Shown here one piece after another: positions 23,098-28,654 of a stretch of DNA of 64,000 bases. The DNA is taken from sequence record PQ287644.1; one strand, given 5' to 3'. The notes under the pieces were generated by a model that searched no databases, was not told where the DNA came from, and was given only the letters and a program-made list of their open reading frames with translations. The first letter of the stretch is position 1; each line of letters opens with the position of its first letter. A program made the translations under genes and the position numbers.

Positions 23098-23228
23098 AAA
23101 AGACCTGGATGTTGACGCCTCATAGGAGGTATTCGCCAAGCAGTATGGGATTGACCTAGGGAGTAAACTGGGTCCATCCATCGTTGATTAAAAACCTTTT
23201 GTCATTAATCCATTCATAGGACACCGTT

Positions 23229-23696
23229 ATGTCGAAGAAAATGCCGCCGGACTTCCGTAAACTGCACCTGGAAGCCTTGTACACCTACCTGAATGAAACC
23301 ACGGGTGCGTGTGTCATCCTGGTTAACACTGACGCCGGCCCTGAAGTGAAAGAAATCGGTCAAGGGAACCCCAGCGTCTTCTTCAACATCGGAGGGTTCG
23401 CGGTGAAGTACCTTCATTTCCATGAGGAGTACGTTCATTTCGAATGCCGTTGCCAGGGGAAGGTATACGAGCTCTTCATCAAGTATGAAGATATCTTGGG
23501 TGTACGGTATAACAGAGACTTGATTTACCTGGGTGGGGTGTGTCGAATAGTAGGTCAGGATGAAGACGGTCGGTTGATGCTCGCCCCTGGTGAAATCACT
23601 CCTCCAGGTCAGGACGATAAGAAAGAATCCTCCGCCCCTAAACCTCAGAATGGACACACCTCTCCGTTCAAGGTCATTGAAGGCGGTAAAGACTGA
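23229..23696 (+). CDS. sspB: SspB-like ClpXP adaptor
   Basis: ALYTYL..VILVNT..VFFNIGGFAVKYLHF.EEYVHFECRCQG...LFIKYEDILGV aligns by eye with the SspB core (ALYEW..HLLVNA..IVLNISPSAVRHL....VSFEARFGG...LYVP..AV.AI). An acidic/Pro linker and the tail FKVIEGGKD follow. Confidence 0.7.
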   Translation: MSKKMPPDFRKLHLEALYTYLNETTGACVILVNTDAGPEVKEIGQGNPSVFFNIGGFAVKYLHFHEEYVHFECRCQGKVYELFIKYEDILGVRYNRDLIYLGGVCRIVGQDEDGRLMLAPGEITPPGQDDKKESSAPKPQNGHTSPFKVIEGGKD

Positions 23697-23821
23697 CCCC
23701 TCACTATCAATACCTCCGGTAGGTTATCCCTACCGGTGGTTAAATTATTCTGTTGAGTGTATCTAATACGTACATTGACCAGAATCATTTAGAATTTCAC
23801 AAACACCTGAGGTAATCCAAA

Positions 23822-24304
23822 ATGCTACCGATTAAATCACGGCTACAAGAAATGATCATCAATGCCCAACCCCTCCCCGGCGTTGTGGATGACATTTACA
23901 AAGGGTACGAGGAAGTTGGGGTGTTCCTCTCCAACTTCGATCGGGTAATCACTCAACTCCCTTTCGATAAGGATATTCTCAATCACCTACCCCGGGGTGA
24001 AGCCAAGACGGAGGACTTCTTCTTTCTCCACACCATCTACCAGGAGCGGAACAAAGGCGCCATCCATGGCTTCGGAGAAGGGTATTCAGGGAACATTCGT
24101 TTCCGGATTAAGATCGTAAGGAACACTAAAGGGGTCATTGCAGGGTTGACCGTAGGGACTCTGGGTTGGGGAATGAAAGATCTGGAACGGGATTTCAAGA
24201 ACAAACACCTGTTGCATGGGGGTGTGGATTACAAAGACGAACTCCTGGGTAAAGTGGTTCGTCATATTGAATTGGTCAAACTCTTCTACGTCGAAGACTT
24301 TTAA
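23822..24304 (+). CDS. Hypothetical protein
   Basis: 160 aa; RBS gaggt. Confidence 0.55.
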   Translation: MLPIKSRLQEMIINAQPLPGVVDDIYKGYEEVGVFLSNFDRVITQLPFDKDILNHLPRGEAKTEDFFFLHTIYQERNKGAIHGFGEGYSGNIRFRIKIVRNTKGVIAGLTVGTLGWGMKDLERDFKNKHLLHGGVDYKDELLGKVVRHIELVKLFYVEDF

Positions 24305-28578: not shown

Positions 28579-28654
28579 TCCGTGATAGCTCAGTAGGTAG
28601 AGCAACTGTTTCGTAAACAGTAGGTCCCGGGTTCGAACCCTGGTCACGGAACCA
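28579..28654 (+). tRNA. tRNA-Thr(CGU)
   Basis: 76-nt cloverleaf: acceptor TCCGTGA/TCACGGA, D stem GCTC/GAGC, anticodon stem ACTGT/ACAGT with loop TTCGTAA, TTCGAAC T-loop, encoded CCA. Confidence 0.97.

Follow-up and report, generated by a model that had tools for sequence, protein, structure and literature searches.

Among the main cytoplasmic proteases of Pseudomonas aeruginosa is ClpXP, for which SspB serves as the textbook tethering adaptor. The well-conserved positions of SspB are those of its dimer interface and its ssrA-binding groove only, and ClpX is bound mainly via the tail (PMC9963277). The ClpX-binding (XB) peptide on its own inhibits SspB-stimulated degradation, and it does the same to lambda O and FtsZ, two substrates whose degradation depends on the N domain (PMC3983244). 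SspB-like proteins are also encoded by phages: pf16 gp18 has been modelled in silico, and a possible role in modulating host proteolysis has been considered for it (PMC5587285); RAY gp039 has been described as a putative, cytoplasmic 'SspB-like ClpXP adaptor' (10.1101/2023.02.24.529968). A literature search found no functional study of any phage SspB. The gene analyzed here had been treated as a discovery in an earlier note on the same DNA, which goes too far, given that its orthologue in phage EL is already annotated and that phage SspB-like proteins are already known from PHROGs and from the discussions of pf16 and RAY.

The DNA under study (the window) is a 64-kb stretch of sequence record PQ287644.1, and its source is an EL-type jumbo phage of P. 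aeruginosa (Elvirus, Chimalliviridae). The gene and its immediate signals are as follows.

23218..23221, plus strand: Shine-Dalgarno-like AGGA, 7 nt 5' of the ATG, by direct reading of the sequence.
23229..23696, plus strand: coding sequence of the SspB-like protein, 155 aa, ATG start, stop codon included; orthologue of phage EL gp86.
23716..23736, plus strand: perfect 8-bp hairpin followed by a U-rich stretch, 20 nt 3' of the stop.

The segment 23694-23765 folds with -22.1 kcal/mol (z -3.3; equally stable shuffles, 0 of 200), and the hairpin at 23716-23736, which a strict terminator scan did not call, is likely a terminator or 3' stabilizer. Together with a sigma-70-like element (TTCACA-16-CAAAAT, 23796-23823) just 5' of the next gene, it suggests that the block's small genes may each be transcribed separately. 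The neighboring genes belong to no family of known function and give no hint of a cargo. An antisense ORF of 147 aa (23214-23657, minus strand) covers almost the entire SspB-like gene. Where EL-type records give two 'hypothetical proteins' for this region, as some do, one of the two is probably this spurious antisense call. The sole tRNA or tmRNA gene found in the window encodes tRNA-Thr (CGU; 28579-28654), and no tmRNA gene was found there.

Across 10 EL-type phage records the protein is 96-100% identical, with complete identity to the HHBS47_1 and HHBS8_1 proteins and 98% identity to EL gp86 (YP_418119; NC_007623 97597-98064). The latter occupies the same genomic place, 3' of gp80-gp85, and differs by three substitutions, all in the linker (T124A, G127E, A136V). 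It is entered in GenBank and RefSeq as a "putative bacterial stringent starvation protein", the gene is labelled hypothetical in most newer EL-type records, and the literature search found no experimental work on EL gp86. A codon comparison of six EL-type genomes, the window included, revealed more synonymous than non-synonymous changes in every pairing of the window with the other five (7-10 versus 2-6). Twelve residues vary among the well-assembled EL-type genomes, not counting two tail differences of the frameshifted vB_PQ1 record, and within-genus substitutions are over-represented in the disordered region, with 5 of the 12 in the linker (121-144). No EL-type phage departs from the tail SPFKVIEGGKD except vB_PQ1, whose record looks frameshifted at this point. 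Specifically, the orthologue of Pseudomonas phage vB_PQ1 (PQ516283; L070:301-813) reads ...VIEGKKSVKG... and has 15 extra residues, which suggests a single-base insertion or deletion within the GGTAAA run; this record (184 kb, 488 CDS) probably contains many similar sequencing errors. Another record, Pseudomonas phage MIZ-Pa99 (PV472050; L068), is EL-type, with a 97% identical gene and the same neighbors, and the Straboviridae entry in its taxonomy line looks like a misclassification.

This pattern of conservation makes it scarcely credible that what is left here is the non-functional, decaying relic of an sspB once captured from a host. Its extreme divergence from bacterial SspB and a composition unlike the rest of the alignment would fit decay, but the frame is intact in all EL-type genomes save for the frameshifted-looking tail of one record, synonymous changes prevail, the tail is invariant, the AF2 fold is confident, and at least eight other lineages of Pseudomonas chimalliviruses retain a homologue.

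At the level of sequence, the relationship to SspB shows by profile methods only, and no curated family is matched at its cut-off. A Pfam scan of the protein returned no match even at E 10, nor did PF04386 match the EL genome, a null result that reflects the limited reach of the model and not a lack of homology. Six NCBIfam SspB equivalog models match the N-terminal ~90 residues with E 3e-7 to 1e-3; the best score is 30.4 bits against that model's cut-off of 191, and the curated cut-offs of the matching models range from 135 to 319 bits. The HMM search against the SspB family suggested earlier gave sub-threshold NCBIfam matches and no match to Pfam PF04386. The protein also matches the PHROG family phrog_8945, 'SspB-like' (E 2e-4), and in a protein-language-model look-up the nearest protein-atlas clusters are SspB and carry PF04386. 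An exhaustive HMMER search found three true distant relatives, P0003-P0005, all metagenomic and 28-37% identical. A fourth match was discarded as a low-complexity match to the linker. The contig of P0005 (L003, logan:SRR14611563_1229) also encodes a virion structural protein ~50% identical to Noxifer and PhiPA3 proteins and therefore comes from an uncultured chimallivirus-like phage. A four-sequence profile (A1; the window protein plus P0003-P0005) finds E. coli SspB chains in the PDB with E 4e-13 and H. influenzae SspB with ~1e-9, and hhalign against 53 bacterial SspBs gives a probability of 98.7% (E 2e-16, 24% identity, residues 8-97). Single-sequence phmmer against the PDB returned nothing, word-based homologue searches returned the protein's own cluster or already-aligned sequences only, and viral-contig scans returned EL itself only.

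Structure prediction leads to the same family and resolves the protein into two regions ahead of its tail.

23229..23591, plus strand: folded SspB-type domain, residues 1-121, ordered from residue ~6 in the AF2 model.
23592..23666, plus strand: predicted disordered linker, residues 122-146, pLDDT ~52-55, rich in P, K, E and Q.

In the AF2 model an N-terminal helix (7-24), homologous to the dimerization helix of SspB, is followed by a beta core, so that the N-terminal domain has the helix-plus-beta-core arrangement of the SspB-type fold. With AF2 run from the four-sequence alignment, the top 14 Foldseek matches are all SspB or SspB-like. From a 46-sequence alignment (mfe0d5fb2caac), 5 of 5 models converge with pLDDT 77-79.5, and local values reach 92-96 for residues 11-90 and 81 for 91-100. 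VIA-align, an unbiased, Foldseek-independent search of 48,161 chains, placed E. coli SspB (8et3) first with Z 13.2 and 1.9 Å over 96 residues, followed by SspB of H. influenzae (Z 12.3), Caulobacter (9.1) and an Agrobacterium SspB-like protein (8.8); the next unrelated fold scored 5.3. Since profile matches and structure predictions agree, SspB homology and the SspB fold of the protein are established, and the earlier description of it as SspB-like stands on homology, fold and alignment alike. Relative to bacterial SspB, a hairpin of ~15 residues (~97-111) is inserted before EDGRLMLA, which aligns with the bacterial E-N-G-Q-G-M-x-F motif. Residues 122-155 have a pLDDT of ~36-55 and no secondary structure in both AF2 models, in keeping with the flexible linker that the earlier note had described.

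The protein departs from bacterial SspB at most of the positions on which bacterial SspBs agree, including positions in the strand that the earlier note had singled out as diverged.

23439..23459, plus strand: FECRCQG, residues 71-77, aligned with the bacterial F-x-A-R-F-G-G strand.

Conserved columns were defined as those with at least 80% conservation across 53 non-identical bacterial SspBs, which gives 40 such columns in the N domain. The window protein keeps 13 of these and has changed 27, and groove and dimer residues are thus not conserved as a set. Kept columns include A16, N53, I54, A58, V59, F71, R74 and G77. In E. coli numbering, the changes include P11 to K, Y12 to L and R15 to E near the start of the domain, and F76 to C with G77 to Q in the F-x-A-R-F-G-G strand. 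The sequence FEARFGG, given earlier as the bacterial counterpart of FECRCQG, is a true variant but occurs in 1 of the 53; FNARFGG and FSARFGG are commonest, and a Pseudomonas-like genome has FEGRFGG. With these 27 replaced columns and FECRCQG in place of F-x-A-R-F-G-G, the claim of a diverged substrate groove is supported. The changed positions are largely those of the groove and the dimer interface because only those are well conserved in SspB (PMC9963277). What is new, as read from the alignment, is that the groove and dimer positions of the EL type are mostly replaced. Because only 13 of 40 conserved columns are kept, cargo specificity is probably altered, and because the changed columns include dimer-interface positions, dimerization would not be assured.

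These data bear on the proposal that the protein is a working replacement of host SspB which binds the Pseudomonas ssrA tag and boosts the clearance of tmRNA-tagged truncated proteins during infection. Family membership is compatible with it, as are the kept residues N53-I54, A58, F71, R74 and G77 in strands homologous to the ssrA-binding region and a best bacterial match to a Pseudomonas-like SspB (33% over 91 residues). The 27 differing columns fall, however, in a protein whose groove and dimer interface are its highly conserved parts (PMC9963277), the host already has an SspB, and the window lacks a tmRNA gene, which together render such a replacement quite improbable.

The C terminus was compared with that of bacterial SspBs from 58 genomes, mostly Pseudomonadales with some Enterobacterales, Aeromonadales and Rhodocyclales.

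23667..23693, plus strand: tail FKVIEGGKD, an XB-like core F-K-V-I and then E-GGKD, aligned with the bacterial L-x-V-x-K columns.

The protein ends in SPFKVIEGGKD and contains FECRCQG at 71-77, both as the earlier note had read them. All 58 bacterial SspBs end at a five-residue L-[RKT]-x-[VIL]-[KRD], with a final K in 54, and none has residues beyond this motif. The commonest tails are LKVVK (23), LRVVK (15) and LRVIK (7), with LKVIK and LTVIK also present; the SspB of the Pseudomonas-like 6.5-Mb genome ends ...RPSLKVVK. The K-V-I of the phage tail lies within this natural bacterial range. In the alignment with 53 SspBs, the L-x-V-x-K columns correspond to F147, V149 and E151. Compared with the canonical motif, F takes the place of L and E that of the final K in the window tail, and four further residues, GGKD, follow. 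Its positions 1-4 keep the hydrophobic and basic XB pattern (F-K-V-I versus L-[RKT]-[VI]-[VI]), and the terminal K and carboxylate are displaced. Set beside the LRVVK-type tail that the earlier note cited for host SspB, the phage tail has four XB-like opening positions but, with E for the last K and a further GGKD, is no canonical terminal motif. A free terminal carboxylate is not obligatory, as the internal XB-like motif of UmuD illustrates. SspB linkers much shorter than ~25 residues deliver poorly, for which reason the EL-type linker would be near the lower length limit for delivery.

The same kind of ending recurs in other Pseudomonas phages:

EL type (window): FKVIEGGKD.
Phabio gp349: MTVIDGGK.
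RVTF4: LTVIQGGKA.
Psa21 gp299: LTLIQGGKK.
D6: LRVIQGGKA.
phiKZ gp232: LTVIKGGKK.
PhiPA3, 262-aa protein: LTLIKGGKK.
201phi2-1, 373-aa protein: LQVHEGGLK.

All eight combine an SspB-like N domain with the C-terminal pattern hydrophobic-x-[VL]-[IH]-x-G-G-[KL]-x(0,1), and by these two features we propose to define the group. The exception is Noxifer gp300, which ends NVVSLFPKH, and canonical tails on the phage side are found in pEa_SNUABM_54 (KLTIVK), pf16 gp18 (TLRVVK) and the metagenomic P0003-P0005 (KLTLVK in P0005). As a second new point, a GGK-extended, XB-like tail is common to eight of the nine Pseudomonas chimallivirus lineages examined and to none of the 58 bacterial SspBs.

The phiKZ, PhiPA3 and 201phi2-1 proteins were found by a genome search with a profile of the phage SspB-like domain (A2; E 3e-15 to 2e-11), and the other GGK-tail relatives with profile A2 or tblastn. 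On sequence grounds, phiKZ gp232 and its counterparts in PhiPA3, 201phi2-1, Phabio, Psa21 and D6 belong to the same kind, which had not been noted before. The genes lie at NC_004629 229299-230207 for phiKZ (PHIKZ232; L077:1489-2397), L079:1495-2283 for PhiPA3 and L078:1501-2622 for 201phi2-1, and in the reference records of these three model nucleus-forming phages the proteins carry no annotation. The PhiPA3 protein (262 aa) is F8SJA7, 'protein 270'. Identical copies of the phiKZ N domain occur in 47 phiKZ-type records, and a few of these label it SspB. These relatives measure 235-373 aa and have linkers of ~130-270 residues, whereas the EL type has only ~25 linker residues; their domains are 13-28% identical to the EL type, and they carry the same XB-like core with a GGK or GGLK tail. 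Since the tail is conserved despite such low domain identity and despite linkers from ~25 to ~270 residues, it is best read as a functional short linear motif. Other short motifs are conserved in the long linkers as well. One of them, P-L-L-[DE]-F-[GP], lies ~25-35 residues before the C terminus in the otherwise divergent linkers of RVTF4, Psa21, D6 and PhiPA3 (L005, L071, L072, L079); it is absent from the short EL-type linker and may be a further docking site.

The conservation of the tail raises the possibility that it is the essential part of the protein, which would then act as a competitor or decoy that shuts out host SspB and N-domain-dependent substrates and shields phage proteins from ClpXP, with cargo delivery secondary or lost. 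In support of this reading, the XB peptide alone blocks both SspB-stimulated degradation and that of lambda O and FtsZ (PMC3983244), no other element is as well conserved as the tail among the very divergent chimallivirus homologues while most groove and dimer positions are changed, and the GGK extension could add contacts and raise affinity. Yet the groove-lining elements of the beta core (N-I-x-x-x-A, F-x-x-R/x-x-x-G and P/K-Y) remain recognizable across the phage homologues, which argues for a kept peptide-binding function, as a pure decoy needs the tail only. We regard this competitor role as unlikely overall, albeit a serious contender.

As to what the tail binds, the N domain of ClpX would be the most economical putative receptor, since a full canonical LT[VL]IK precedes GGKK in phiKZ and PhiPA3. 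The rival proposal is a peptide-binding module of SspB fold with a tail that attaches to something else than ClpX, for instance another host AAA+ machine or the phage nuclear shell. The absence of the extension from all 58 sampled bacterial SspBs would be in line with this, and phiKZ gp232, which was detected during infection and is absent from virions, was enriched in a shell-enriched fraction by SEC-MS; in the same study, however, most of six tagged phiKZ candidates, including gp232, were diffuse outside the shell (PMC10449902). The fit of tail positions 1-4 to XB and the complete motifs of phiKZ and PhiPA3 also speak against another partner, as does the lack of a host protein with a similar tail in five Pseudomonadales genomes. 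Specifically, a search for the C-terminal pattern [LVF]-I-x-GGK, outside of which the GGLK tail of 201phi2-1 falls, found no other such protein in EL or PhiPA3 and one extra match in phiKZ, about the control level. In the five Pseudomonadales genomes the counts equaled those of the reversed-pattern control, and no real ORF ends in this way. Across four phages and these five genomes, the search thus gave no lead to another receptor or to a mimicked host protein, and a partner other than ClpX is improbable. The 'GG' was also considered as the C terminus of a ubiquitin-like protein or Pup, but this likeness is superficial: the tail sits on an SspB domain, and in phiKZ and PhiPA3 a complete XB motif precedes it.

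With regard to origin, a tree of N domains places bacterial SspBs and pf16 in one clade (99/95) and Phabio, RVTF4, Psa21 and D6 in another (99/91), which the EL type joins weakly (16/61) on a very long branch. A common origin of the EL type with the other GGK-tail phages is compatible with this tree at that weak support (16/61), and with branches this long it does not discriminate between one and several origins of the GGK tail. Recent capture from a host was considered and ruled out, as the EL type lies outside the bacterial clade (99/95), unlike pf16 gp18. Because of this position on a long branch, and because the best bacterial pairwise match, the Pseudomonas-like SspB, reaches just 33% over 91 residues, the EL-type protein represents an old, fast-evolving viral lineage. 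Noxifer gp300 (L082:1075-1506), an SspB-fold protein of 143 aa, is encoded directly upstream of thymidylate synthase, and the Phabio SspB-like gene lies two genes upstream of it, which suggests that synteny with thymidylate synthase is conserved in the Noxifer/Phabio group and not in EL.

Taken together, the reading that we rank first, tentatively and at a little short of an even chance, is that of a ClpX-docking adaptor with altered cargo. The product is a much-diverged SspB family member with an SspB-type, putatively peptide-binding domain (~6-121), a disordered linker of ~25 residues and a short, putative docking motif at its C terminus. According to this model, the phage protein would stay in the host cytoplasm, where its F-K-V-I tail core would bind the N-terminal zinc-binding domain of host ClpX in the manner of a bacterial XB tail. 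In place of the host ssrA tag the diverged groove would hold some other cargo peptide, or it would bind that tag with altered affinity, and the cargo would thereby be tethered to ClpXP and degraded. In addition, the tail would occupy the adaptor site used by host SspB. For the window protein, we infer dimerization, ClpX binding, the identity of any cargo and any effect on infection, and both outcomes proposed earlier, retargeting to defense proteins and competition with host SspB, are likewise matters of inference.

The ClpX-docking adaptor can be extended to nucleus-forming Pseudomonas jumbo phages in general, a conjecture that is on balance unlikely to hold in full. The 'XB + GGK' tail would be a higher-affinity or differently regulated ligand of the ClpX N domain, through which a viral adaptor displaces host SspB and reprograms cytoplasmic ClpXP, directing it at host factors such as defense proteins or steering it clear of the phage's own, with the phage genome meanwhile protected in the nucleus. 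If true, phages would provide a natural case of protease reprogramming, achieved with a conserved viral SspB whose groove has been rebuilt and whose docking tail is non-canonical, and which is encoded in EL, in phiKZ and in six more lineages of Pseudomonas jumbo phages. Its domain of 120 residues and its tail of nine would offer a simple handle on how nucleus-forming phages act on the host cytoplasm, and it could supply a new tethering tag for engineered degradation systems.

The closest known systems include E. coli and H. influenzae SspB (8ET3, 1OX9, 1OU9), which have the same fold and the same layout of domain, disordered linker and short hydrophobic-basic C-terminal motif. The window protein differs from them by an identity of ~20-24%, by the 27 of 40 changed columns, by the insertion of ~15 residues before E-[ND]-G, by a linker of ~25 residues, about half the ~45-50 of E. 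coli SspB, and by F-K-V-I-E-GGKD in place of a terminal L-R-V-V-K. The SspB of the T4-like Pseudomonas phage pf16, gp18, is 55-57% identical to bacterial SspBs, lies inside their clade and represents a recent host capture with a canonical T-L-R-V-V-K tail, in contrast to the EL type on its long branch outside. Others are gp039 of the Erwinia phage RAY and gp157 of the Erwinia phage pEa_SNUABM_54, SspB-like proteins that are also encoded by chimalliviruses; pEa_SNUABM_54 gp157, however, ends in a canonical terminal K-L-T-I-V-K without GGK. More distantly, SPO1 gp53 acts on ClpCP, and T4 PinA and T7 gp4.5 act on Lon. With these the window protein shares the concept of a phage protein that redirects or blocks an ATP-dependent protease of the host, but their folds are unrelated and the proteases are others.
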